A DNA stretch of 64,000 nt from Eutreptiella sp. 'Long Island Sound 2002' (taxonomy: Eukaryota; Protista; Euglenida): positions 2,728,001 to 2,792,000 of the forward strand of contig OZ038378.1 in the NCBI GenBank assembly GCA_964036045.1, written 5' to 3'. Numbering within the stretch: the first letter of the stretch is position 1; every line of letters starts with the position of its first letter. The position numbers and the translations under genes were made by a program. The notes beneath the pieces are model-generated. The model saw nothing but the letters and a program-made list of their open reading frames with translations. It did no database searches and had not been told where the DNA came from. This document shows positions 4,481-64,000 of the stretch, in pieces.

Positions 4481-4507
4481 ACGTTCTGAGTGCCTGCCTT
4501 GTTTCAG
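4481..4507 (+). other. Relic euglenid spliced-leader-like sequence upstream of the PAP gene
   Basis: ACGTTCTGAGTGCCTGCCTTGTTTCA matches the euglenid SL as I recall it (ACTTTCTGAGTGTCTATTTTTTTTCG) at 19/26 positions without gaps. It ends 18 nt before the ATG. Confidence 0.6.
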
Positions 4508-4525: not shown

Positions 4526-6100
4526 ATGCACCTGCATGCACTGGCCCTGTACTGGGCTGTGGCCCTCACAGACGCCATGTTTGACGGGATTTACCCGCAT
4601 CACGAGCATCCTCCCAACTGCAAACACGGTTGTGCCCTCTGGTCGGATTTGGCTGCAGATGGCTGCGCGGCGTCTCAGTCCGAAGCCAATGCGCTGTGGT
4701 CCGGAGGCGTGCCGCCCGCCGCGGCCTCACGATTCTGTGCAACCCCAGCCCACAATCCCGGCGAAAATGCGGGCTGGTGCTATTGCCGGGACAGCGGCTC
4801 TGAGGCATGGGGTTACTGCACGCCGTCTTTGCACTACCCTTCAGAGCTCGGGGTCTATCCCGTGAAAGACGGTGCTGTGGTCATTGCCTTCGTGACGCTC
4901 AGTCAGAATCAGTCCGATGGGGCGCCTGAGGTCACAGTCGAGCCTTCGCCTTCAAAGCCCGTGAACTCCTGGAGCATGTGCCCTGCTGGCGGCACTGCCA
5001 CCCACCGAGTCATGCACTTTGTTTTCTTGGGAGGCCTCGCTCCCTCTGTGCTCTACAAATACCGTGTGAGAAGTGGGTCCCCAGAGGCCCCCTGGAGCGA
5101 TTTTGGTACTTTCGTGAGTCTGCCGGAGGCTGGCGCCGCCACACCGTTCACCTTTGCGATTTGGGCAGATATGGGGGTGTACTCCTGGAACAATATGGAC
5201 AGTGTAATTGCAAACTTTGAGGCTCGAACCATCGCATTCGCCGCGCACATTGGGGACCATGGCTACGACATTGGGGATCTTGGGCGTGGGGACGGCTATT
5301 TCGATGCGATCTCTGCCATGTACACCAAAGGGCTCTTCGTACCGGGCGTTGGGAATCATGAGTACTACCACGACCATTTCCATAGGTACGACGCATATAC
5401 GAGTGGGATCGCGAAGTACAACCCGTCGCATTCTCAAAAATACTACAGTCTCAACATCGGCCAGCTGCATCTCATTGTTCTGGATTCCACGCCATATTTT
5501 GACATGCCGGGCAGCGACAAGGCCCAGCAAAGGGAGTGGTTGGAAGCGGATTTGAAGCAGGTGAACCGGACGCGCACGCCTTGGATCCTGATGACAGCTC
5601 ATCACCCGTTGTACTGCTCCTCCATCACTTTCTATGACGATGACGCCAAGGCACAGCGCTACGGGGCCAACTATTCCAGCCAAGGGGGCTTCCAAGGATG
5701 CGTGGGATCGGGGGAGGAGCAGGTGGCTGCCATGCGAGCGGACTGGGAGCCGCTCATGCTGGCATATGGTGTGGACGTCTACATGTGTGGGCACGAGCAT
5801 AACTATGAGTCCATTTACCCTGTGGCCAAAGGGAAGCGGATACAGAGCAGTTTCACGGACCCCCGTGCCCCCGTACACATAGTCAGCGGTGCTGGAGGTG
5901 CCCCAACGTTGGACCAGTTCGGCCCTCCCGGGCCATGGACACGGTTGCAGCTCAATAACGCCTGGAGCTACTCCAAAGTGACGGTGCTCGGGGCACATGC
6001 ACTGAAGTGGCAGCAATATTTCAACAGTTATTATGGGGGAGGGCTCGCTGACGAGTTTGTTATAACCCAAACTGCACACGGACCGTTCAGAGGGAATTGA
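4526..6100 (+). CDS. Secreted purple acid phosphatase (ACP7/PAP-like metallophosphoesterase) with N-terminal Cys-rich kringle-like module; intronless
   Basis: All five PAP motif blocks are present (DMG, GDHGY, GNHE, TAHH, GHEH), preceded by an FN3-like PAP N-domain (...YKYRVRSG...WS...F). The hydrophobic N-terminus MHLHALALYWAVALTDA looks like a signal peptide. ATG 4526 follows a TTGTTTCAG acceptor, so the ORF-track start at 4490 is not used. Confidence 0.92.
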   Translation: MHLHALALYWAVALTDAMFDGIYPHHEHPPNCKHGCALWSDLAADGCAASQSEANALWSGGVPPAAASRFCATPAHNPGENAGWCYCRDSGSEAWGYCTPSLHYPSELGVYPVKDGAVVIAFVTLSQNQSDGAPEVTVEPSPSKPVNSWSMCPAGGTATHRVMHFVFLGGLAPSVLYKYRVRSGSPEAPWSDFGTFVSLPEAGAATPFTFAIWADMGVYSWNNMDSVIANFEARTIAFAAHIGDHGYDIGDLGRGDGYFDAISAMYTKGLFVPGVGNHEYYHDHFHRYDAYTSGIAKYNPSHSQKYYSLNIGQLHLIVLDSTPYFDMPGSDKAQQREWLEADLKQVNRTRTPWILMTAHHPLYCSSITFYDDDAKAQRYGANYSSQGGFQGCVGSGEEQVAAMRADWEPLMLAYGVDVYMCGHEHNYESIYPVAKGKRIQSSFTDPRAPVHIVSGAGGAPTLDQFGPPGPWTRLQLNNAWSYSKVTVLGAHALKWQQYFNSYYGGGLADEFVITQTAHGPFRGN

Positions 6101-6202: not shown

Positions 6203-6740
6203 CAGGCTTCGTTTATAAGAGCTATTTTGCAATGGGGGGGGGTGTCTGGGTGGGTGGGTCTTCAGCCGGGTGGGTGGGTCTGAAGCTCTGGACCCCCCCC
6301 CCTTTATAATTCTGAGTGTCTCCTGGGTTGGGCTCCAGCCACCCCTTCTTTCTTTGGTCACAGGTGCCTTGTCTGGCTGTTTGCTGGTGCCCCCTTCCGC
6401 TTGTGCAGACACCATGCCAAAATCTCCTTGTGGTTGTGGGGCACTGGTTGGAGCCTCTGAGCAGCTACCGGCGGGGTCGTACATTTCTTGGCATGTACGG
6501 CAGCATCAATGGGTGCCTTGCATATTGATGGTTTCCTTTTTGCTATATGTGTCACCCTTTGGGGCTGGGATGCCTAACCCGGGAGAGCGCCTTGGCTTCA
6601 ATTTGGTTTGCAAAAAATGCTCCCCACAGAATTATAAGGGGGGGGGGTCTGGGTGGGTCAAAAGTCGGGTGGGTGGGTCCAAAGTTGGGTGGGTGGGTCT
6701 TGTCCAAAATACTCCCCCCCCCTCTTATAAACGAAGCCTG
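6203..6740. mobile_element. hAT-type MITE (538 bp)
   Basis: Perfect 19-bp TIRs CAGGCTTCGTTTATAAGAG (6203-6221) and CTCTTATAAACGAAGCCTG (6722-6740), flanked by an exact 8-bp duplication GCCCAAGC (6195-6202, 6741-6748). An 8-bp TSD and a CAGG terminus are hAT hallmarks. No coding capacity. Confidence 0.9.
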
Positions 6741-27930: not shown

Positions 27931-30900
27931 CATCACTACTACTAGGAACCTAACCAGATTACTAAAAATTACCACTAAATCCTAAAAACACCCCACACCA
28001 CCCCTGTATACAGCCAATGGGCATTTTGAATGTACTCTTGTCCATTTTGATGTCTGTCAAACAAATATTTGGGGTGGAAAGGGCTAGTATTAGGGGTTTG
28101 GACCACAATGTTACGTTTTTTTGGTACTTTGGTTCGGATCCTAGTAGTTTAAAGTCGGAATAGTTAACACAAAAGTAACGCGCCCGGCGCGCGCCGGACA
28201 AACACCCCCCCATTCCTGCCAGCCCAGACATCGTGAGCATGCCTATGATGATCCTACGGAGATGGCTACGGAGTGGGGACCCCGGCTCATCCTGGGAGAA
28301 TCACGTGGGGCACAGAGAATGCGGATGCACCCCGCACTCCAGCAGCCAATGAGATCAGGAGCTCTTGTGCAGTATGCCCGGTCTCTGTGCCGTCGCCTTG
28401 TTTGCTTCTACCTCAGCAGCCCATGCGAATGGTTCCAGCGCACCCTTGTATACATTGGTGCCCATATTTGGAGCCATAATGATTTGGCACACATTTGTGG
28501 CTTGGGTGTGGTTGGTTTCTTCCAGCATAGGCCTGATGTTTTATAGGAAAGAAGAAGAAGCAAACAAGGACTTGGCCGCACTCACTTGGATTCAGGGACA
28601 GCATGTCACCAGGCCCAATCCTCCAAGATGCAAATCTGATCCAAACCTAAATATGAAGAATGCAACAACAGTTCTGCATTCGGCTGAACAAGACATATTA
28701 TGCATTGAAGGACATAGCCGTGGTATTTCTTACTCCTTGAATATCCTCTTTGAAGAATCCACCAGGTTGATACATGAGCAGAGAATAAGCTATGGACCAC
28801 CAAGGGCCATGGTATTATGATCTGGAGAATGGTTGAGTCTTTGAACCAGGAGGTCCACAAGGAACAAGAGTGGCAACAGCTGGTGAGGCCACGAGCCCAT
28901 GAGCGTTGAATCAGCAGCTGACACGAGCTGCGTAGACTCATTCTTCGCCCGTGGGGCGATCTCAAGACCAAAGCACGAACCCAAGAGGGCAAAGAGCATT
29001 CTTGAGTCCAACAAAAGTAGAAACTTCAGCTCTTAGACAGTTGCCCCGAGTTTGCCCCGAGGTGGATGAATGGCTTATCATCGTCATGGACGAAGCCAAC
29101 CCCTTGATCTGTAGTGTGTCTCAGCATGCCCAAGTGATTGTTTTTTCCTCTGTACTCTGCCCTTGTAGTTTACTAATTGTTGTGAGGGTAAGAAAATGGT
29201 GAAAACGAACTGAATGTAGTATGTGGGTGACTGTTTTGGAAGCTTTAGTACTCCGTCTTCAGTTAATGGTCGTGTAACCAGCTGTTTCTTTGCTTTGTTG
29301 CCCCCCTCGCCTTTTTACAATTTGTGTTCATGGCCTCATGGGCAAATGTTCAATTCACCACTATGCACCCCAAGACCACACCACCAGACATCGTGCCATC
29401 TCACACACTTGCTCTCCTCACATTCACCACTGGGGTTCGATGGACATTCACCGTGGGAGGTGGGGTGGGAGGGGTGGCACACTGACAGGTTGAGAGGGGA
29501 TAAGTGGGGTTAAACAAGGGACGGCAAGTGCTTGGATTGCTATTCCATGCACTACATTTGTAGAGTCTGGTCTGGTGTGTGTGGGGGGGGTGCATGGCGT
29601 CATTTGCACCACGAGCTGTGCTGTTCGTGTTGTGCTTTCATCTCGCACATTGGGGTCTTCGCATGTTTGAGGCTTGTGGTCAATCAATCACTGTGTCTCG
29701 TATGTTTTTCGGGCAATGACTTCATAAAAACACATGGAGTGTTGCTACCTTGACCTCAGCATTGAACAGAGGTGGTGTTACCTGGAATCTAGTTGCCTAC
29801 AATATCTTTCACTCTATAACCTAGCGGGACACAACCACAAATTGTCTATTCTATGGTCCCTTGTATGTTGTCTTGGCCTGAGGAGCAACACTGCACAACT
29901 GTCTAAAACACTGCACTACTGTCTGAATGCGAGTTTGGAGTGGCGTTTGGAATCTGTTGGGTGGTTGCTTTGGGTGAGCACTTGCGCCGCATGTGTGCCA
30001 CCCGCTGCTTATGCGGCGAATTTACTCAGAACGTCCTGATTTTTACCCCCTCGAAAAATAGCCCCTAAGCAAAGCAAACACTTTGGCCTAAGAAATTGCA
30101 TAAACACCCTTCCTTCCCGTAACCATTGTACAACCAAGAGCACAATACAACTGACACCCACCTCATAATCTTTGAAATGGCCCTTGGCCCGTTTGTGGCC
30201 CTTCACAGTCCCAAATAAGTACATCCACACACGAGAGGACAAGTCCAAACAACAACACAACACCTTTCCCATTGATGCATAGATGCTACATCAGGTGCTC
30301 CCCCTTTGAGGAAGTAGGTTCGTACAGTATGCAAAGGCACCCTTACAAAGAAGTGCAGGAGGATGTGCAAGAGCATGACACAAGGGCTGTAATAATTGAA
30401 GTCCGAAAGTCTCCCTTATCTTTTTGAGATAGAGCTTGGTTGACATGCAAGCCTAGAGGGTCTTTGTGCACACACAGCACCCGATACAACCAACCACCCC
30501 AAAATACCATATGCAAGAGCCAAAAGATGAAAAATGAATGTGTTGGAGCAACATTGATGCACCATATCTTCTTGTAGCTCCTTTCACACCTTTTGCATGA
30601 GGTGATCCACGCGGCATCATGTGAGCAACCATGGATGTTGAGGACCACTTGGCAACCTTGACTTGGACTTCTTCGCCCACCACCTGAATAGTGAGGATGT
30701 AACTAGCCCTCTCGCCTAGGTCACCAGTCACACACACAATGTCCGCATAGCTTAGTGCAGTTTTCCAAAAGCATTTTGGACCTACCATCCGGCATCCCTC
30801 GAATTTCTTGTGCTCATAGCAGGAAGCCATGCCCTCCTGTGCCCCAGCCCCTTTAGCCCCTGCCCCCTTGGCCGCTGCCCCTGCCTCTACCCGTCATACC

Positions 30901-31008
30901 CCGCGCCGTGCTCTGGCAGAAACAGAAGTTGTTTATTTCCTTGTTTACCGCCAGCCTTTCATGCCACTCATTGGTTTTCTATAAGAGCTCTGCAGGCATC
31001 AGGGCCCA

Positions 31009-31257
31009 ATGCCGTGCACCAATTTCATGATTGTGGGGAAGAATGACACCCCAATCTATGAAGTGGAGATCTCAGACCGCAAGAACCCCACGAAGCCCCA
31101 GACCATGAAGCAGTTCATTATGCATGCGGCTATGGACCCGTTGGATGAGATGATGTGGACATCGCAGGCGCTATATTTGAAGAGTGTTGACAAGTTCAAT
31201 GAATTCGTTGTGTCAGCGTATGTCACACCGGGTTACATCAAGTTTCTGATCATGCAG
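31009..31257 (+). CDS. TRAPPC2: TRAPP complex subunit 2 (sedlin/Trs20), exon 1 of 2
   Basis: FMIVGKNDTPIYEVE...QFIMHAAMDPLDEMMW...LYLKSVDKFNEFVVSAYVTPGYIKFLIMQ matches sedlin. A GT donor is at 31258, and an AG acceptor lies just upstream of the ATG. Confidence 0.93.
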
Positions 31258-31769
31258 GTGTGACCCAACTTCAGAAGTGGACGGCAGGGGCAGAGGCAGC
31301 GGCATGTGGGGTGTTTCATGGGGTGCACCATGCGCAGAGTTCCACTTACTCAGCACCAGTGGGGGGCGGGATTCCAGAACCCCCCCGCCCCCCTGAAGCG
31401 ATCGGGCTCTGCGCCTTCGGCCAATCAAAAATTTTCTCTGGTGCCTTCGGTGCCAATTAGTTTAGACCAAAAATTTTTATCGGCGCCTTTGGTGCCTCTA
31501 ACAACTCAGCACCCGGAGAGGGGGGGTGGTTGGACCCACCCCCCTCGGGCTTTGCACTTTGGGCTTTTCTCTCCAGACCACGAAAGGTCCATAGTGTGTG
31601 TGCCCTTTCAGCCACCGCACACACACTGAGTTTTGAGTGTCACACGAGCATTGCTAGAAACGAAAAAAGATTTTATCTAATTTTTTTTTATGTCAAGACA
31701 AGTGTACAGATCTATATTTTTTTGAGTGGTAGCACAATTGTATTTGAAAGAAGCGAAACCATTCATCCC

Positions 31770-44693: not shown

Positions 44694-45110
44694 GAGGTAT
44701 ATACGGATGACTCCTTTGCAGAGGAGGCGCCGGGTGTAGGTTTTGCGGGCTTCCGTGTTTGGTTCGGTCCTCTAGACCCCCGGAATGTCAGCGGCCACCT
44801 GGATGGGGTGCTATAGATAATAGGGCGGAGTCGGTGGCGGCCATCACTGCGCTCTGCGCGGTACTGCCGGCCCAGCCCCATCTGTGTCGTAACGGACAGT
44901 AAGTATGTCTATGATGGAACCAACACCCACATGTACCGGTGGTTCCTCTTGGGGTCCAATGTGTCAAACGTAGATCTCTGGGAGGACCTGCACGCGGCTT
45001 TGCGGGCCCGCGCTGCCCCGACCGTCTTGCGTCATGTGTACAGTCAAATTGGAATCGTGGGTAATGAGAGGGCAGATGTCCTTGCCAACTCGGGGCACAT
45101 CGGGCATCCA
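44694..45110 (+). mobile_element. RNase H1-type domain, pseudogenised; probable 3' end of a non-LTR retroelement
   Basis: VYTDDS...VWFGPLDPRNVS...(frameshift)NRAES.AAI.AL...(frameshift)VVTDSKYVYDG...N.DLW...HVYSQIGIVGNERADVLAN gives the RNase H D-E-D-D motifs, with a stop and compensating frameshifts. Confidence 0.8.
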
Positions 45111-47004
45111 GCGAGGCTCCAGTTTCTGTGCGAACAGCGGGCCCACCATGGCGTGTCGCCTGTCATCTTGTGTGCCTGATTTGTTGGGTGGCCTCACTGT
45201 GTACGCTTGCATAGTGTTCCTTGCACCTTCCTCTTGATGTGGTTTGTTTGCTGCGGTGTTTCCGCGCCGTCTATGCGTTCCTACCTTTTCTCCTGACTCT
45301 CTCTTTCTCGCTCTATGGGTGGTTGGCTGGCGGCCCCGTGAGGGCCAGCAGGACGGGCATGATGTCGAGTTCATGTTTGCCCTATACTCCTAGGCAGTGC
45401 TGCTCTCACCGATGTTCTGGTTCTTGGGAGCCTCTCCCCCTTGCCCTACTCCCCCCCCGCCCCCCCCCCCCCCCACGGCTTGGCAGGGATGCATTGGGAT
45501 GGTTTGTGGGGAGAGGTAGGGCACATGCGCATGCAATGTGTGTCTTGCTGCATTGTGGTGGGGTTTTAGGGCTAGGAGCTGCGGTGTGTTGGCAGCACCC
45601 TGTACACATCCAGAGCAGACGCCCGACAGGGCTGCCCCCCTGCAGGGCCGAACACCGAACCGATGGTTTGCAGTAGTGGTCAGACGTAGGAATGTCGAAC
45701 CTCGCAGTTTGAGCATGATTGCAATTGATACCTTGGCACACACACACCAGCGAGACCCATGGGCTAATGCCTCTGCGTCCGCCGACCGCACAGTGGACTC
45801 GCCCAGGGGGCCTCCACCAAAGCACAGAGCACAGAGAGGGATGCAGGGCACGGTAGGAGCACAGACTCCACTCCCTCTTGTTGCATGTATGCGTGTCCAG
45901 TTTCCTCAACCCAGTTGCGTGAAGCCAGCAGCCCGACGACGGGGCATCAGAACATCGGAACTTGCAGGGAGGTCGCTTAGCAGTAGGTCTTAGAATGTTG
46001 AACCTCGCAGTTTGAGCACGATTTGAATGATTTGGGCGTCACACACACACACACACCTTCGGATACAATTCTGATATACACGCAAGTACACTCATATTGA
46101 TTGGTGTGTTATTTTGGAGAAACTACACTCTTACGTGGCCGGTTATGCATGTAGGGCAAATGACCAAGATGCACAATTTGTTTCATTTTCAATGCCATGA
46201 CGGGGTATACATGTCACCAAGGACAGTATGTGGATATCAGTGTTTTGGGGTGAGTATTTCATTCTTTGAAAAGAATTTGGAACTGCAGCTCCAAAATATC
46301 TCCAAGGCCCCTGTGATGGAGGTGCTGCTTGTCTCTCGTTTCACAAAAGTAGCGCGCCAGCGTGCGCCCGCAAAGATTCCGGTTGTGAATGAGACCGTGT
46401 CGGTGGGTGGTCAGTGCAAAATTTGTGGAAGATATTTCCACATTGAGAGAGGGCAGGGTTCATTGATGGCGAGACAATGGTGCTAAAAGCAGGAAAGGGC
46501 TGAGCTTGAGAATTGAGACTAGAAATGGGAGCAGCAGTGGCTGTGCTAGTGGATGTGAAAAGGGGTGGTTGTGGGGTGCGGTAGTGGGAGTAGAATGGGT
46601 GTACCGATGGTAGGGGTGGGCTTGGGAGTGGGCGCAGGGCCGGGGCTGGGGATGGGGGTGGGGCAGGGCTTTGCTTGAAGGGGAGGGGGGCGATCGGCGA
46701 GATTCCAGAGCGGTTGCAGAGCGGTCACAGGGGACTCAAAGCGGTTGGGGGGCGGTTACTGGCGGTTGGAAATGCGGTTGGGGCGGGTGTCGGGGTATGG
46801 GAATGCCTTTGGGGGAGAGTCAGGGCCGGCGTGTTGGGGGGGAGGGGGGTACCCCCCTCCCCTTGAAGCGATTCCCTGGGGTGGGGAGTGTGGGTGGGAG
46901 CCAAATCTTTGCAACGACCGCCATGGCCATACACAAGGCAGCATAGCCACAAACAAGTGCCCGGCATGCCCTGCCTCGGGGTCTGCATCCCCCTTCAGAT
47001 CCAC

Positions 47005-56371: not shown

Positions 56372-58404
56372 TCAAGGGCCAGTGCTGCTTCATAGCACAC
56401 CAATTCATTGCTGTGCACAGCAAACGTGAAGAGACCCACCTACCCCACCCTATCACCAAGTGCAACATGTTTCTCTCCTACCAAGATGGGGGCTGCATCA
56501 CACCTGATGCACATTGGGCAGTGCAAGTACCCTGAGGCTGCACGCAAAAAAAAGCATCAATTTGCCCAACCCAAAGCGTTAGGCATGTGTATACGACCTC
56601 ACCATTAATATACAAAGGTCACCTTGAACACCATTGATATGCAAGTTTAAATGACACAATCGCGAATTATGGGAACTGCTAAAATGAGGAAAATAGATAA
56701 CAAGAAAGGAAAAGCCCTAGATAGAAAAGAGATTAACCCGTGATGACGAGTCCGTTATCAAGAAGTGGAAGACATCGTGTCACAATGATTCCACAGCCTG
56801 TGTTTCAATGTTATGACGCGTGACAGCAATACCCAGCGCGAGATGACAATCCAATGCAAAGAACAACCTTTTTTGGAAAAGCACCTCAACACCATGCATA
56901 GGGTGAATTTGGTGGCCATCTTCATGCTATCACATCTGGCCTCACACAACCAGCCAATATGCACGGGCCAGCCGAGGGTCAATAATTCAGTGGCACGCAT
57001 GAGAACGCGTCAACATACCCATGTACATACCTCCGCCAAATCGAGAGAGGCATATCATTAAGCCATCAATGTTATGACGCAAGCCGCCAACACATGCCAC
57101 AACGACGATTGCATTGGCGCTAATGCTGTGGGATGCTGCCATTAAGTGGTAGCACCCAGCAGTGCAAAGGCTCTCATCACCGAGATAACTTGAGTGAAGC
57201 CCCAAATGATGATCCGGCTCGATGTTTAATCCCTGGGCTTCAGATGCTAAGCACACACTGGGATGATGGAGCCCAGCGACCATTGGTGTATACCCCCTGG
57301 GGCTTTTTTCCTCTGCAACAAACGCATCAGCAGTGTCAACAGTGACAATTGACACAAGTTCGAGTCTTCTCGCTGCAAAAACGTCCGTCTCACGACGAGC
57401 TCACTAAATGCTTTTCCATGGACCAAATTCTCCAGTTGCAAATTCTTTTCCAGGAGCAAAACATAGGGCAAAGATGGCAAACATACAACAGGTTTAGATG
57501 GATGCAGTCTTCAAAGTCTGGAGGCCCTGTACGCCACAGTGCTTTTTGTACATCACCATTCTTGGTTGCCTCACTGGCACTACTCGTTAAACCCGTTGAA
57601 GAGTGCTAAAAAGAAAGACAAACATAAGTATGAAACTGGTGCAGAAACAGCATCACATAAACAAAGGGACAGGTCTGTTATGTGGCTTCGTGTGCACATG
57701 ATCGGGGCCTAGTGCTGCTCAGTATTTGCCTGCGCGCATAACCTGCTACGCCAAAGCACTGGTCATACACAGCAAAGTTGGAGAAGACACCTATGATCTG
57801 CCTAGGATTATGAGGCATCATCAAGCATTCTCATGTCTCAATAGACAAACAGGACATGCCTTATAAGACATCAGACATCAGACACCACCACCACCATGGT
57901 GAGTGTGTGGTTGTATGAATTCATCTATACACCCACAGACGAAACTGTTTCTTATGCAATTGTCCAACCCTGCCCCTACCTTTGCACGATTCATCAATGT
58001 GTCACCATCCCTCTTCTCCCTGCTATGTGCTGGGTAGAAACACATGCGTACACCAATGAGGGGTGTTTGCCTGGCACACTCCTTTGGGCAATTGTCCTTG
58101 ACTTTCGTCCCAAATTTGCCATCTCTTACAGAAGTCAACCTGCTGAAACCAAATATTGCAGATCGTTGGGACTTAGCCTACTGTGGTAACTTCAGCAGCA
58201 CCAGGCCCTCATGCTGGTTTATGCTAGGCTCGCAGCAAAACTTGCGGCCCAGAAGACCTGTGCCCGACAATCATGGATTCCATAGACTCAAGGGTCCGCT
58301 GATCCATTATCTGGCTCTGCTGTGTTTGCTGTTTGGATCCTGTTGCAAGTTGGCAAACACCCAATGCGGAATGCTTCTATTTCTTTTTTGCAACCCCAGG
58401 CATG

Positions 58405-58430
58405 CCTTTCTCAGTGTCCATTTATTTACT
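58405..58430 (+). other. Relic euglenid spliced-leader-like sequence upstream of the TBC gene
   Basis: CCTTTCTCAGTGTCCATTTATTTACT matches the recalled SL 26-mer at 20/26 positions without gaps and ends 32 nt before the ATG. A polypyrimidine tract plus CAG (~58377-58399) lies just upstream. Confidence 0.68.
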
Positions 58431-58462
58431 TATTATCCCTGATTGTTTTCTCTCTAGTTTCC

Positions 58463-60430
58463 ATGTCGACGCTTGGCATGAAAGGGGGCCCGAAAGTCCC
58501 CAACGCTGCATTCGTTCAGAAGCTCCACAAAGTGCTTGATTCTTTATTGGGCTCAACGAACATTGACACTGTCCTTTTTTCCAAGGAGTCGGTTGCCGTA
58601 CACCCTTTGGGTGTTGATAAGGAGGGTATTGATGGAACTGTCTTCTTTCTATCGCAAAAAGCGACGGGCGGTGTGGAGAGCAAGTTTTACCTTTGTTGGT
58701 TGCCTGATTCTATATTAGCAATCATAAACCAGGGGCTCCTCGCGCCATCATCCAAGTACTCAAAGCCCAGCAACCAATCTTTTGGATCGCAACCAAATGC
58801 CTCTGGGTCACCGGATACAACTCCTGACCACCAAATGCATGTATCTGAGCTTTCTACCGCATATGACATGCACACCTTTGAGCATTCCCCCGATTGGATG
58901 CATGCCTTTGCGATTGAATCAAGTGAAATTCACATTCTCAAGCAAACAGTGGAACAATTCCGATGGTCTTGTCTTGCCATAGCAAGTAAAGCGGGCATTG
59001 AACACCCTCCGTTGTACTTCCATGATGGTGGATTGGCAAAATTGATGTCCCAACTGCAGCAGAAGATGAATTTGACAGAAATTGCCCCCGGCACATATCG
59101 TGTTGAGCCGTTCAATGAGAAGTTGAGGAAGTCCCTCAATCAACTTAATCTTGGTGGCTACGCGAACATCCTTGAAAAGCCAAGTTTTTCTTTACTGCAA
59201 TTAGGCTCAAAGGTGACAAAGAAATTTCGGGAAACCGGTGCGCTCTTGACCGGGGCTCAGGAAAAGAGCATGTTGGAGGACCTGGCCTTGGGGGATATTG
59301 AAGGTGCAAGAAGACAAGATTCCTGGTGCAACATCGACTTTGAGCAATTACCGTCATCCTCAGCTTCGTCAGAGCCCGTGGTAGCAGCTGCTGGCCCAAA
59401 GCCCAGCGAGAAAATTAATGACGCACCAGGTTTGAGACAACCCATGGCCTGGGAAACGCCAACCCAGGCCAAACGGAACGCGGAACCTTTGACAGAGTGT
59501 CGATGGCGTGCTGGATTTGACGAGGAAGGGCGCATGAGCTCTGACGAATGGACACACATCAAGCAAGCGATTTTTGATGGGGGTGTAGAGGCTTCCATCC
59601 AAGCACAAGTATGGCCCTTTATTTTGGGGTTCTACAAGCCGGACAGCACTGCCGCAGAGCGCGCTGTGTATCGACAGCAAAAGGACAGTGAGTATCACCA
59701 GTACAAGCAGCAGTGGACCAGCATCACCGCTGAGCAAGAGTCCCATTTCAAGGAGTTTCGAGACCGACGGTGGCGGATAGAAAAGGATGTTGTGCGAACC
59801 GATCGGCTCTATCCATTTTACGAAGATGAGACCAACATCACGATGCTGAACGACATCCTCCTCACTTATTCGTTCTACAATTTCGATCTGGGGTATTGCC
59901 AGGGGATGGGAGATTTACTTTCGCCGCTGTTGATGCTGCTGCAAGATGAGGTTGACGCTTTCTGGGCATTCGCCTGCGTGATGGACTCATTGGGGGGGAA
60001 TTTCAACCGCGACGAGAATGCTATGCAATGGCAATTGACTGCCATTGGCAAGCTGCTGAAGGTCGTGGACCGTCATTTGTGGGACTACTTTGAGCAAATG
60101 GATGGGTTGAATTTCTTTTTCTGTTTCCGCTGGATTCTGGTGCGCTTCAAAAGAGAGTTTGAATATCCAGACATCTTAACCCTGTGGGAGGTCCTTTGGA
60201 CTTGCCCTTTCGCGGACAACGGTCTGGACTATCATTTGTGGATGTGTGTGTACCTTCTGCACAGCAAGCGGTCGACTATAGTCAACGAGGAGATGAAGAA
60301 TGACGACCTCCTCAAGTACATGAATGACCTCAGTGGCAAACTGAACGTAACAGAGCTCATCTGCAATACAAATGCGTTGCATGAGGCTTACCGGGACACC
60401 CCCATTCCGCTTTGCCTCAAGAATCAATAA
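58463..60430 (+). CDS. TBC1D15/TBC1D17 (Gyp7)-like Rab GTPase-activating protein, 655 aa, intronless
   Basis: The TBC domain has IEKDVVRTDR (Arg finger), YCQGMGDLL (Gln finger), FFCFRWILVRFKREF and LWEVLW. The N-terminal PPLYFHDGG block is typical of this subfamily. ATG follows TTTTCTCTCTAG. Confidence 0.93.
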   Translation: MSTLGMKGGPKVPNAAFVQKLHKVLDSLLGSTNIDTVLFSKESVAVHPLGVDKEGIDGTVFFLSQKATGGVESKFYLCWLPDSILAIINQGLLAPSSKYSKPSNQSFGSQPNASGSPDTTPDHQMHVSELSTAYDMHTFEHSPDWMHAFAIESSEIHILKQTVEQFRWSCLAIASKAGIEHPPLYFHDGGLAKLMSQLQQKMNLTEIAPGTYRVEPFNEKLRKSLNQLNLGGYANILEKPSFSLLQLGSKVTKKFRETGALLTGAQEKSMLEDLALGDIEGARRQDSWCNIDFEQLPSSSASSEPVVAAAGPKPSEKINDAPGLRQPMAWETPTQAKRNAEPLTECRWRAGFDEEGRMSSDEWTHIKQAIFDGGVEASIQAQVWPFILGFYKPDSTAAERAVYRQQKDSEYHQYKQQWTSITAEQESHFKEFRDRRWRIEKDVVRTDRLYPFYEDETNITMLNDILLTYSFYNFDLGYCQGMGDLLSPLLMLLQDEVDAFWAFACVMDSLGGNFNRDENAMQWQLTAIGKLLKVVDRHLWDYFEQMDGLNFFFCFRWILVRFKREFEYPDILTLWEVLWTCPFADNGLDYHLWMCVYLLHSKRSTIVNEEMKNDDLLKYMNDLSGKLNVTELICNTNALHEAYRDTPIPLCLKNQ

Positions 60431-60561
60431 CCGGCGCGTGCACTCCCGGGACTTTCCGCAGGTCACCCGCACAGATCATGCGCAACACTGCGTTGTGGTG
60501 TCCCGCATTACCCCCCCCCCCCCTCCAACAGCTTGCCCAAGGCGTGTGGGTGTACAGTACT

Positions 60562-61964
60562 CAACCCTATGAAGTCTCCAATTTTCCGGAGACCCCCGGA
60601 GACCTCAATTTTCCCCCATTTTTCCACTCCGGAGACCGGAGACTGAATTTTTGTAAAGAAAAGTGCCGTTTTTCTGCCATTTTTCCGACCATTTTTCCAC
60701 CGTTTTTCTCCGAACGTCCCGTTTTTCATCCATTTTTCCATCCATTTTTCCAGCCATTTTGATAATGTTGTCCTTTGGTTTTGCTTTTGGTTCTTTTGTA
60801 CCATTCCACCTCTGCTTCACATTTTTCACACAAATGGACCCTGAGGCTTTTTGGCCTCATGAGGGTGTGTTGTTCATGATGAAACAAGAGGTGGTCAAAC
60901 GTGGCTGGCTGTCGGATGCTCAATCCTCGAAGAAGCTGAAGGGCGAATGGAAAAAGGCTTCTACTTTGGGGATGCATCTGTCAGCCAAGTATAGTGGGGC
61001 CCGTGAACCGAAGTTTGCAAATGTCGATCTGATTCTGCCCGTGGTGGTTGTGGGGAAACGTGAAGAAGCCGCCAGGACTATTTTGAATGAGAAAGAACGC
61101 CTACTACCAACTCCCCAGGTATTGCAATGGGCGTACATTTTCGTTTTTCGGTGCAAAATAGCGGCTTCTCGTCCTACATGTTTTTGTGTTTGTGTCTATC
61201 TTCCTGTTTTTGTGTGCAGCATGCAGAACACTCACCGGAAAATGATGTGGGGCAGCCATCGGGAAATGCTTCACAAACGGCCCCGGTGGACGAGGAAACG
61301 CAAGAAGGCCCTGTTGATGAAGGGCCAAGTGAAACTGGCACCCCTGATGAAAAGGTGGTGCCCCCTGAAAGTTGTGCAATGCACCCGAGTGCTATTGTCT
61401 TTTTAATAGCCACTTTTTTTTGTTGTCCTGCATAGGTGTTGGACACTGCCTTTGAGGACTTGCTGAACATTCCCGCAATGTACCGCATTGCATGGTCCAT
61501 CCTGGCCATTCCCCACACTTCTTGTGATGTAGAACGCTCGTTTTCAGTTTGGAAGCGTGTTCGTTCCGACAAGCAACAGAGTATGGCGGAGGGAACACAC
61601 AAGGCCTATGTCTCCTTTTGTTTCAATGGTGTAGTTCCACCACCATGAGCAAGTACAAATTGTGAGTGGTACACGAGATGGCAAAACGATTCTTCGCTTT
61701 GAATGCACCACCTACTGAATGCTTGTGTTGCAATCATGTGTGTCGTCAAAGAAGTAACAGTGGCGAGCAAACGTGCTCTGGCATGCCATACCCCCGCATT
61801 TCCCCCCATTTCCCCCCCGTTTTCCCCGTTTTTCCCCGTTTTTCCCCGTTTTTCCCCGTTTTCCCCCATTTTTCCCCATTTTCCCCCATTTTCCCCATTT
61901 TTCCCATTTTTCCGTGGCCCAAAAAAGACTTGGAGACTCCGGGGTGGGAGACTTCCAAGGCCTG
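60562..61964 (+). mobile_element. Internally deleted hAT transposon (~1.4 kb)
   Basis: Imperfect TIRs CAACCCTATGAAGTCTCC / rc CAGGCCTTGGAAGTCTCC, flanked by AGTACT on both sides. Subterminal TTTTCC(C) and CCGGAGAC repeat blocks at both ends, and a hAT dimerisation motif inside. Confidence 0.78.
60834..61648 (+). CDS. Spliced truncated hAT transposase-derived ORF, join(60834-61118, 61220-61354, 61436-61648), 210 aa
   Basis: Two short GT-AG introns (101 and 81 nt) with polypyrimidine tracts join three open exons in phase 0. The last exon IAWSILAIPHTSCDVERSFSVWKRVRSDKQQSM...FN is the hAT C-terminal dimerisation domain. Confidence 0.7.
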
Positions 61965-64000
61965 AGTACTTGTGACGTGACTTCACTCCGGCCTGATTTG
62001 TAGGTGTGGGCCAAGGTGCTCTGTTTGTGTGCAGTTTTGATTGTTTCCGGAGTCACACGGGCTCTAATGTGATTTGGCTGACCGTCCTCCGCCCGTTTGG
62101 CTACCAGCCATTTTGTTCTGTGTTAGGGGTGATGAAACACACATTGGAGCCGGGTGCATCATAGTCAGTGCCTGGGTAAAACAGTGTTGACCGCCGTGCG
62201 CAAGATACCTCTTGCCTCAATTAGAGGGGGCGTTTGTACCGTATTAATTTGGGACCCTGCCGGATCTCGGACAGCGGCGGCCGGGGGGGGGGGATTGCGT
62301 CGTTCTGTTCTGTACAAAAAGCCGTGGCAGGTATTTTGTCGTGACTGCAAAATGCGGTGACCAGGGGGCTTTGCCCCGCCTGCTCACCTGCATCAAAAAG
62401 ATTTGAGTCCGCGAAATTTCTGTGACCAGTTCTGGCTGTCGCCTGGGTATCACAGGCGAACAAGGCAGGCGCAGCACGCCTTGTCAAAAAAAACACACCC
62501 CCATCTTCCTACGGAAGGCGCCTTCATATCAGCCTGAAACGCCTGTTGAGGATTTTTACTGGCGCTGTGCTTCGGCTAGACATCCCATGCTCATGCCCAT
62601 GTGTGTTTCACCCTGAGTACCGAAAAATGTTTTTCTGTCATATTCCCAAGTACCTAAAATTCCACATCTCCGAGCTACCAAACAATCTCCACAAGATGGT
62701 ACGTGCAATCACGGCCACCTGCAACCTGCATATTGTGTTCGTGAGCAGGCTGAACTACTCATGAATAAGCTGATTGATTTTCTGGTGCTCACGGTGATGA
62801 TGATTTTGTGCTCAGGGATGCAACGGAACCAAATTACACAGAATGCAATTCCATGGTCATTGCAACACTATCTTTTTGATTTTTTGAGTTCCAGTTGAGC
62901 ATATTAACCACAGTGGGACCTTCCTGACCCCATGGGCGATGGGGACCCTAACTTCTCAGGATGACAAAGAAACACCAACACGATCCTGGTAATACAATTT
63001 TGATATCCCGCACTCTTTGCGCCCATTTCCATCATTTTACCGAGAGGGCAACAAGGGGTCATGCGCACAACAGGGGACGTTCCCAATGATCCATTCCCAG
63101 GGCTGGGAATCACAAAGTTTTGGGATTTAACCCAGTGGCCCGATCTCTGGCCCAATCTTCGGATTTTTTTCAGCCCTGCAGAGGTGCTACGGGAAGTTAT
63201 AACACCCTCCCATTGTGTGTGTGCAACACATTTTTTTCCGCAAAGTTGAGTCTCTGCCTCAGTTCCTAGCATCCGTGATAGACATCCGTCTTTCCACCAG
63301 GCTCTGCATCACCATTGTTGGAGCAATCTCGGCTTTGAACCCGCATCTGCTCTCACTTTGTCTGCTCTGCCACATCTCAGCTCCTAGTTGTACAAGCTTT
63401 GGGCTTCGGTGCAACTCATCCTTTACTGCCCTGGCATAGCACAGCAAATTGTTCAAGTAGACGGGAAATCTCTTTGTGCCTTTGCCCTGAGTTGCACCCC
63501 TCTCTCCTTTTGTTTTGTAACCCAGATCTCAGTGTATGTTGTAAGTTGTGTAATTTTTTGTCCCGTAAACGTAAGTACAAAAAAAGTCATACTGTGGTGT
63601 AATTTGGTTTTGCAGTAAATGCGAGTTCAAAAAATCGTTTTGGTGAGTAGTGCAAAACCTCCAAATCTGGTTCTTGGCTTGACCACAAATATAAAATGCA
63701 GCACTGTACAATTTTTTTTGGTACTCGTGTTTATGGCAAAACAAACAAACAAACAAACTGCACGACGTACAAGGTTTTTGTATTTGTGTTTAGCGCAGAA
63801 CAAACAATTCCACGACATGTGATTTTTTTGTACTTGGGTTAACCGCAATACAAAAAAATCACCCGCCCTTGCAACAAGGAAAAACTAGCGGCCATGTGCC
63901 ACACTTCTGTTTTTGTACCCGCTTTGGGGACCCCCAAGACAGCAGGGGTTATGTCGCCACATTGCCCACAGGTGGGCCCCCAAGACAGTAGGAGTTATGG

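Follow-up and report, generated by a model that had tools for sequence, protein, structure and literature searches.

A decayed spliced-leader copy most likely precedes a single-exon RabGAP gene in a euglenid genome

Introduction

Several studies of dinoflagellates indicate that the spliced leader (SL) is encoded in DNA, in sense orientation and just before the start codon, that repeated rounds of the process produce tandem relics, and that such copies survive well, given that trans-splicing provides a new 5' end (PMC5585692, PMC6050394, PMC12014239). In the literature searched, SL-relic retrogenes seem so far to have been described only for dinoflagellates, and no description of DNA-encoded SL recycling in euglenids was found. 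The locus analysed here resembles the dinoflagellate system in that an SL-like sequence lies in DNA, on the sense strand and upstream of an ATG, in a genome where full and truncated SLs stand in tandem at 81 sites. It differs in belonging to the phylum Euglenozoa and in its leader of 26-28 nt, which is T-rich; moreover, the relic is single, 23% diverged from the SL and known from DNA alone.

Processed retrogenes of the mammalian L1 type are likewise intron-free copies of spliced mRNA, and SL-headed LINE families, which could supply the reverse transcriptase, are abundant in the present genome. A poly(A) tail and a target-site duplication are the classical hallmarks of LINE-made retrocopies. 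Unlike in L1-type retrogenes, neither was found in the flanks of this locus, and the gene is functional and has no second copy beside it. Loss of introns through reverse transcriptase and recombination with cDNA has been described, for example, in Kinetoplastea (PMC11613528). This route would explain a single-copy gene that lost all of its introns and shows neither a poly(A) tail nor a duplication nor a surviving parent; however, homologous replacement is not expected to import an SL, as the locus offers no genomic counterpart to it, and the 5' junction would have to be non-homologous. The SL-RNA genes of Euglena gracilis have their 26-nt exon in common with the relic, whereas their 5' flank and GT-started intron are absent from it.

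Results

The window, by which we mean the whole 64,000-nt stretch of DNA that was analysed, was compared on both strands with the SL of E. gracilis, ACTTTCTGAGTGTCTATTTTTTTTCG. This leader is printed in PMC6242988, and PMC5654406 gives it as a primer of 28 nt; the SL-RNA genes of the genome itself carry it as their exon. The highest-scoring match in the window, CCTTTCTCAGTGTCCATTTATTTACT, shares 20 of 26 bases with the leader in an ungapped alignment and stops 32 nt short of the ATG at 58463, as had been predicted (Table 1); the agreement becomes 22 of 28 if the extra 5' bases of the leader are counted. From its sequence, this stretch is most likely a decayed genomic copy of the Euglena SL.

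None of 200 block shuffles reached 20/26. In 1.7% of trials, composition-matched permuted SLs attained at least this score somewhere in the real window; in the 100 nt upstream of the ATG they did so in 2 of 20,000 (p ~1e-4). Taking the permuted SLs together with composition-keeping shuffles of these 100 nt, the local P is ~1e-4 to 2e-4. Background rates were drawn from the window and from 128 kb of other sampled loci of the same genome, and in this further 128 kb no stray match of 19-20/26 was found away from true SLs. Three other matches in the window, all T-rich, score 17/26. An 'older relic' that had been suspected between the SL-like stretch and the ATG (CTGATTGTTTTCTCTCTAG, 58439-58457) scored 10/16 and 11/21 with a permutation P of ~0.7, and was discarded as noise. 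No RNA families were detected in the window by Rfam.

The downstream frame is uninterrupted from the ATG to the TAA at 60428-60430 (1,968 nt), so that the intron-free coding sequence of 1.97 kb described earlier is an intact single exon. Its product contains PH_RBD (PF12068, residues 36-224, E = 5e-12) and RabGAP-TBC (PF00566, residues 380-603, E = 2e-37), with the arginine finger IxxDxxR at residue 439 (IEKDVVR) and the glutamine finger YxQ at 478 (YCQ). An N-terminal PH-like Rab-binding domain and a TBC domain with both fingers place it in the TBC1D15/17/Gyp7 type. Homologues span 92-95% of the protein length, the best named ones being TBC1D15 proteins. The nearest relative, with 41% identity, is encoded on a 4.6-kb metagenome contig where its frame is also uninterrupted and no SL-like sequence is present. 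No match was returned by a protein search with the first 220 residues or by a metagenome scan for the ATG region, and a metagenome search for related loci found none. An identical protein is recorded from a genome contig and from nowhere else. RNA-library contigs at the locus are colinear with it and cover the coding part only, none reaching the 5' end; over the 57000-62000 interval examined, one metatranscriptome covers 58642-60475 in pieces, and three other runs behave like DNA.

Table 1. Features of the window around the RabGAP and phosphatase genes (positions are those of the whole stretch)
Feature	Position	Strand	Basis or remark
Most likely a decayed DNA copy of the SL	58405..58430	+	Top SL match in window; flanks unlike SL-RNA gene
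Single-exon TBC1D15/Gyp7-type RabGAP (TBC) gene, 655 aa, single copy	58463..60430	+	ORF, Pfam, homologues
Pyrimidine tract ending CAG, candidate trans-splice acceptor upstream of relic	58377..58399	+	Sequence only
TTTCTCAG inside relic, candidate current acceptor	58407..58414	+	AG 58413-58414 is the SL's own internal AG
Spacer of 32 nt, presumed 5' UTR, with third candidate acceptor CTCTCTAG at 58450-58457	58431..58462	+	
Putative second SL relic, 19/26, 19 nt before phosphatase ATG	4481..4506	+	Next-best match in window
Single-exon purple acid phosphatase gene, 524 aa	4526..6100	+	
Unique 3' flank up to high-copy repeats, no poly(A) relic	60431..60561	+	Repeats start ~60562 (depth jump)

The candidate acceptors upstream of the TBC gene would have different consequences. 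The polypyrimidine-CAG tract that had been predicted just upstream of the relic is present, but it is probably not the main acceptor, because an mRNA spliced there would include an ATG (58402-58404) that is out of frame. Within the relic, the AG at 58413-58414 is a candidate acceptor in view of the 81 SL-stump junctions found elsewhere in the genome, and a junction of TTTTTTTTCG to base 58415 would mean that the relic's own AG is in use. An SL joined at 58400 would keep the relic within the mRNA, in the manner of dinoflagellates, and one joined at 58458 would leave it in the outron. All three junctions would be consistent with a relic.

The only other long intron-free gene of the window encodes the phosphatase, and the second-best SL match precedes its ATG; in the 100 nt before this ATG, none of 20,000 permuted SLs reached 19/26. 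This putative relic has G+C-rich surroundings and has TTCTGAGTG in common with that of the TBC gene, and the two stretches differ from the SL at different positions. The original prediction also held that two intron-containing genes of the window show no SL match. This stands for Sedlin, the single such gene identified, whose first exon (30985-31260) ends in a GT donor and whose best upstream score is 13/26. The comparison of intron-free with intron-containing genes is one of three genes against one. Upstream of the ATG of L012, another intron-free TBC paralogue in the genome, nothing resembles the SL, the best score being 12/26.

Marks of retroposition were sought on the 3' side and in the rest of the genome. 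No A-rich stretch that could be a poly(A) relic occurs in 60431-64000 except a (CAAA)n repeat at 63733, and the repeats beginning at 60562 may have displaced such a relic. No 8-16 nt repeat common to 58375-58406 and 60431-60800 was found as a target-site duplication, in a search of low power at 23% divergence. The genome contains no close copies of the TBC gene, and no intron-bearing parent or paralogue was found in it.

At the scale of the genome, a pattern search allowing up to 3 mismatches gave 7,985 DNA-encoded SL copies (control 0), 1,536 of them with exactly 3. Exact SLs followed by the intron G, which correspond to SL-RNA genes, are dispersed and number ~1,541; another 1,768 exact SLs are not followed by this G, and more than half of the exact copies therefore lie outside SL-RNA genes. 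At 81 junctions (control 0), exemplified by loci L017 and L043, a full SL precedes a 16-nt SL stump cut at the leader's own AG, the SL being joined to TGTCTATTTTTTTTCG. One lectin gene (L016) is headed by an SL and free of introns, and its collinear parent has at least 10 exons over 18.7 kb on C5. About half of 30 sampled SL loci head repeat families, one of which has at least 89 copies, and in young SL-headed copies long open frames begin 3-195 nt after the SL. Recycling of trans-spliced mRNA into DNA operates in this genome; the suggestion that cDNA recycling may shape the euglenid genome is thus strongly supported by the 1,768 exact SLs, the 81 junctions and the lectin gene.

Discussion

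It seems rather probable that the TBC gene is a retrogene or a cDNA-converted gene, and the best reading of the sequence is that the relic derives from the gene's own mRNA. The gene is intact, the RNA-library contigs at the locus are confined to its coding sequence, and the two best SL matches of the window each lie before the ATG of a long intron-free gene. The relic-to-ATG spacing of 32 nt fits that of young SL-headed copies. Euglena genes are usually intron-rich, with 55,727 genes and 703,976 introns in E. agilis (PMC12501133), which counts in the same direction; draft data for E. gracilis give only ~2 introns per coding sequence (PMC6366073), so that intron-free genes need not be rare. Also to be counted against a retrogene are the missing poly(A) relic, target-site duplication and intron-bearing parent, the paralogue without an SL, and the composition of the relic, whose first half is a good 3' splice site and whose remainder is T-rich. 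For the proposal that the gene is a functional retrocopy, the position, strand and statistics of the relic, its phosphatase twin and a likeness confined to the SL exon speak in favour; a poly(A) relic, a target-site duplication and an intron-containing parent or orthologue were not found in the searches above.

If the TBC gene arose in this way, an SL-trans-spliced, fully spliced mRNA would have been reverse-transcribed and written into the genome, either elsewhere, the intron-bearing parent being lost afterwards, or in place, overwriting the parent. The copy would not have needed a promoter of its own, since a new SL could be added at any usable AG before the ATG, and a DNA-encoded SL would bring such an acceptor along, as pyrimidines plus AG (CTTTCTCAG at the TBC locus). 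The copy would then have stayed expressed, and the gene now stands as the sole TBC1D15-type member of its kind in the genome.

The stretch itself could have had other origins. A pyrimidine-rich trans-splice acceptor followed by a T-rich 5' UTR may resemble the T-rich leader with no common descent. The SL indeed opens with 10 bases that resemble a 3' splice site and closes with 12 that are almost entirely T, and both the 1.7% of permuted leaders and the three further T-rich matches fit such a look-alike. However, the probability of the match in the actual upstream 100 nt is low under both types of control, the match takes in both the CTTTCT block and the non-T core AGTGTC, the phosphatase relic shares part of its sequence in a G+C-rich setting and the Sedlin upstream region scores poorly, so that a chance resemblance appears unlikely. 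The stretch may instead be SL-derived but belong to another SL-headed insertion, a LINE or a retrocopy, that landed before an otherwise ordinary TBC gene and now provides the acceptor or 5' UTR of that gene. Most DNA-encoded SLs head repeat families, and the SL relic is not linked to the TBC gene by a poly(A) remnant, a duplication or a parent. This origin is nevertheless improbable, given that the 32-nt spacer downstream of the relic resembles the 5' end of none of the sampled SL-headed families (P = 0.78), that a random insertion would rarely fall in sense orientation at this distance from an ATG, and that the same layout recurs at the phosphatase gene.

A DNA-level copy of one of the dispersed SL-RNA genes, with no mRNA stage, could also be considered, given the ~1,541 exact copies scattered through the genome. 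The flanks of the relic, however, resemble neither the conserved 5' flank (P = 0.81) nor the intron (P = 0.97) of the sampled genes of this kind. The likeness stops at the SL exon, and therefore neither of the two stretches is a decayed SL-RNA gene; for the one upstream of the TBC gene this origin was rejected and is very improbable. It has also been proposed that dinoflagellate SL relicts located 50-100 nt before the start codon, which were reported as better conserved, act as promoters (PMC6050394). By analogy, the stretch could be a cis-element under selection for its resemblance to the SL, for instance in translation or splicing control, but the mismatches of the window's two relics with the SL fall at different places, as free decay would predict, and such an element is hardly to be expected here.

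A retrogene origin of the TBC gene would make the SL a built-in barcode of retroposition in a second, unrelated trans-splicing lineage, and the number and age of functional retrogenes could be determined throughout the 2.3-Gb Euglena genome. The relic-borne acceptor would explain the lasting expression of promoter-less copies. The kinetoplastid branch of the Euglenozoa is almost intron-free, and reverse transcription of trans-spliced mRNAs as a driver of intron loss in this phylum would become testable. We put forward tentatively, as quite possible though short of probable, that housekeeping genes which are conserved and single-copy in Euglena, the RabGAP and the phosphatase among them, are retrogenes that replaced intron-bearing ancestors and were expressed at once through the SL-borne acceptor. 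In the same tentative proposal, recycling of SL-tagged mRNA would rank among the main ways in which Euglenozoa renew genes and lose introns, would have arisen independently of dinoflagellates and could be dated for each gene from the decay of its relic. Taken alone, the TBC locus has a modest practical value, namely a corrected gene model with a single exon and probable acceptor sites.

A spliced-leader relic ahead of the TBC gene

An SL-like stretch (SL, spliced leader, 26 nt) ends 32 nt ahead of the ATG of the TBC gene, which encodes a TBC1D15/Gyp7-type RabGAP. As the original prediction had it, the match is ungapped, covers 20/26 positions and precedes an intron-free coding sequence; the observation is confirmed. 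The leader sequence used for that match also proved correct: it is printed in this form for E. gracilis (PMC6242988), and a 28-nt SL primer carries two extra 5′ bases (PMC5654406). In the 2.28-Gb euglenid genome that harbours the window (C1:2728001-2792000), the exon of the SL-RNA genes consists of the same 24–26 nt, followed by GTATATACTCGC... and with a conserved flank on the 5′ side.

Features of the window
Feature	Position	Strand	Description
Second-best SL match	4481-4506	+	ACGTTCTGAGTGCCTGCCTTGTTTCA, 19/26; 19 nt before phosphatase ATG (4526)
Purple acid phosphatase gene	4526-6100	+	single exon, 524 aa; only other long intact gene of the window
Sedlin/TRAPPC2 exon 1	30985-31260	+	Pfam E = 3.5e-23, profile positions 1-78 of 129; GT donor at end
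Candidate acceptor CAG	58397-58399	+	after pyrimidine tract
SL-like stretch (relic)	58405-58430	+	CCTTTCTCAGTGTCCATTTATTTACT, 20/26 against SL ACTTTCTGAGTGTCTATTTTTTTTCG
Candidate acceptor CAG	58412-58414	+	inside relic; counterpart of the AG at 81 stump junctions; G-to-C change makes YAG
Candidate acceptor TAG	58455-58457	+
TBC gene	58463-60430	+	ATG 58463 to TAA 60428-60430; one open frame, 655 residues

Block shuffles of the window never reached 20/26 (0/200). A stricter null, because it keeps the real, T-rich sequence, was given by permuted SLs (composition-matched rearranged leaders): in 3,000 trials, 1.7% yielded a score of 20 or more somewhere on the two strands of the window. Within the 100 nt before the TBC ATG, permuted SLs reached 20 in 2/20,000 trials, and shuffles of those 100 nt did so against the true SL in 4/20,000. 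The second-best match of the window stands before the phosphatase gene, and in the 100 nt before that ATG permuted SLs reached 19 in 0/20,000 trials; the phosphatase is a single-copy gene whose paralogues are distant and for the most part uninterrupted. A further 128 kb of the same genome, from sampled loci, contained no stray 19–20/26 match apart from true SLs and tandem stumps. Two intron-containing genes had been said to have no SL match, and this holds for Sedlin, the one verifiable in the window, whose best upstream score is 13/26. A counter-example is an intron-free 626-aa TBC paralogue (L012, C21:28788938-28792378, minus strand), with at best 12/26 before its ATG.

A worn SL-RNA gene was rejected as the source of the relic, given that the 60 nt before and the 60 nt after it are unlike the 5′ flank and intron of such genes (P = 0.81 and 0.97); the flanks of the phosphatase relic are likewise unlike them. 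The 32-nt spacer between relic and ATG shows no likeness to the 5′ ends of the sampled SL-headed families (P = 0.78), and the weaker stretch within it, once proposed as an older relic, is at chance level (P about 0.7).

Lesser matches also occur in the window. An exact 12-nt SL core, TTCTGAGTGTCT, lies at 6310-6321 (+), about 210 nt past the phosphatase stop codon and directly after a small element (about 6213-6307) that is bordered on each side by TTATAA and ends in a G run and a C run; no open frame follows the core. A 17/26 match at 29686-29711 (+), located about 1.3 kb ahead of Sedlin exon 1, is SL-like with internal deletions (CACT..GTGTCT..TTTTTCG) and may be due to chance.

Recycling of SL-tagged RNA across the genome

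The 26-mer SL is present in 6,449 copies at ≤2 mismatches and in 7,985 at ≤3 (reversed control, 0), and the 1,536 copies with exactly 3 mismatches indicate a long decay tail. Exact SL 24-mers are followed by G, as in SL-RNA genes, in 1,541 cases and by any other base in 1,768. Among 30 sampled non-G copies, the 5′ flank varies from copy to copy and the sequence past the SL is not intron; about 15 different sequences follow, most with an ATG within 3–60 nt and several with long open frames. One SL-headed repeat family (L024 type) comprises at least 89 copies at 95–99% identity; its open frame, about 830 aa long, gave no Pfam hit in the first 499 residues. Another family (L020, L022, L029 and others) accounts for about one third of the sampled SL copies outside SL-RNA genes.

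An intron-free C-type-lectin-like gene of 434 aa starts with the SL plus 16 nt (L016, C1:835319-836620), and a second retrocopy of it is disrupted by stop codons (L019, C1:8185467-8186739). Twelve collinear pieces matching this gene extend over 18.7 kb on C5 (27471844-27490565), and this set is its multi-exon parent or a paralogue. The junction CTATTTTTTTTCG-TGTCTATTTTTTTTCG, in which the end of a full SL meets a stump of the SL truncated precisely behind the leader's internal AG, occurs at 81 dispersed places (controls, 0), at times with three units in a row. At L017 (C1:1042748 region) and L043 (C1:38085175 region), a full SL is followed directly by a second SL and/or the 16-nt stump TGTCTATTTTTTTTCG. 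These junctions record repeated trans-splicing and reverse transcription, and imply a full cycle in which an SL is added, the RNA is reverse-transcribed and integrated, the copy is transcribed, a further SL is joined at the AG of the leader now encoded in DNA, and the product is reverse-transcribed once more. The SL-plus-stump pattern has been reported in dinoflagellates (PMC6050394). Genome-wide recycling of SL-tagged RNA is very well supported, and the suggestion that cDNA recycling shapes this euglenid genome is strongly supported by the non-SL-RNA-gene SLs, the stump junctions and L016 with its multi-exon relative. The literature searched yielded no description, for euglenids, of SL relics encoded in DNA or of SL-tagged retrogenes, a blank that is not proof.

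Loci L015 and L035 share a short element with a 5′-truncated SL, about 175 nt of common sequence, (AAAAAATTCC)n and an A16 tract. The base just ahead of the CAC of the SL, in front of CACTTTCTGAG, is A in 6/6 SL-RNA genes. In the copies outside them (L015-L044) it is T 11 times, A 7 times, and C and G twice each, which may reflect the capped 5′ end or be no more than flanking sequence.

Origin of the TBC gene

The TBC product has a PH-like Rab-binding domain and a TBC domain with intact arginine and glutamine fingers (IEKDVVR at 439, YCQ at 478), and alignments with homologues named TBC1D15 span 92–95% of it. The Rab-binding profile is matched from its first position, at residue 36, so no 5′ exon is absent. 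An estuary-sample RNA library contains pieces that match the coding sequence perfectly and colinearly, and none that stems from the 1.6 kb of unique DNA 5′ of the gene; this is consistent with expression, though thin as evidence. Runs X1, X2 and X4, labelled estuary metatranscriptomes, hold perfect pieces of the gene.

The gene had been taken for a functional retrocopy. A retro-origin is the best explanation and, in our view, a reasonably probable one; the relic and the genome-wide process speak for it, and the missing poly(A), duplication and intron-bearing parent against it. No A-rich relic lies between the TBC stop codon and the window end, and no flanking duplication was found. High-copy repeats at 60562-62000, including CCATTTTTCC-type short repeats and with contig depth up to thousands, begin 131 nt past the stop and may have broken up the former 3′ end. 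The TBC gene occurs once in the genome, where the closest other matches are 29% identical; no intron-containing parent survives there, and no orthologue of known gene structure came to light. For a single copy that lacks poly(A) and duplication, in-place overwriting of the parent by cDNA fits about as well as insertion elsewhere followed by parent loss. The weight of the intron-free state is uncertain, since the mean for E. agilis is about 12.6 introns per gene, but coding sequences in an early E. gracilis sample had about 2 each.

Under a retro-origin, a fully spliced, SL-capped TBC mRNA would have been copied into DNA, and the copy would have needed only an AG acceptor upstream of the ATG, because 5′ ends are made by trans-splicing. 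If the acceptor at the pyrimidine tract were used, the mRNA would take in the ATG at 58402, which is out of frame and starts a long overlapping reading frame; we therefore infer that the main acceptor is one of the other two, both further downstream. Among known systems, the relict-DinoSL retrogenes of dinoflagellates come closest; the TBC locus resembles them in the SL relic, exon-only likeness, orientation, distance and a process active in the genome, but not in poly(A) or duplication.

An RNase H open frame (44817-45176, +) and several long open frames that gave no Pfam hit lie in a G+C-rich block at about 44-56 kb; they probably represent a retroelement. A JGI metagenome contig (L045, 4,623 bp, with A8 at its end) carries three closely packed same-strand genes, whose products are a lectin, an L5e-like ribosomal protein and a TBC protein that shares 41% identity with that of the window.
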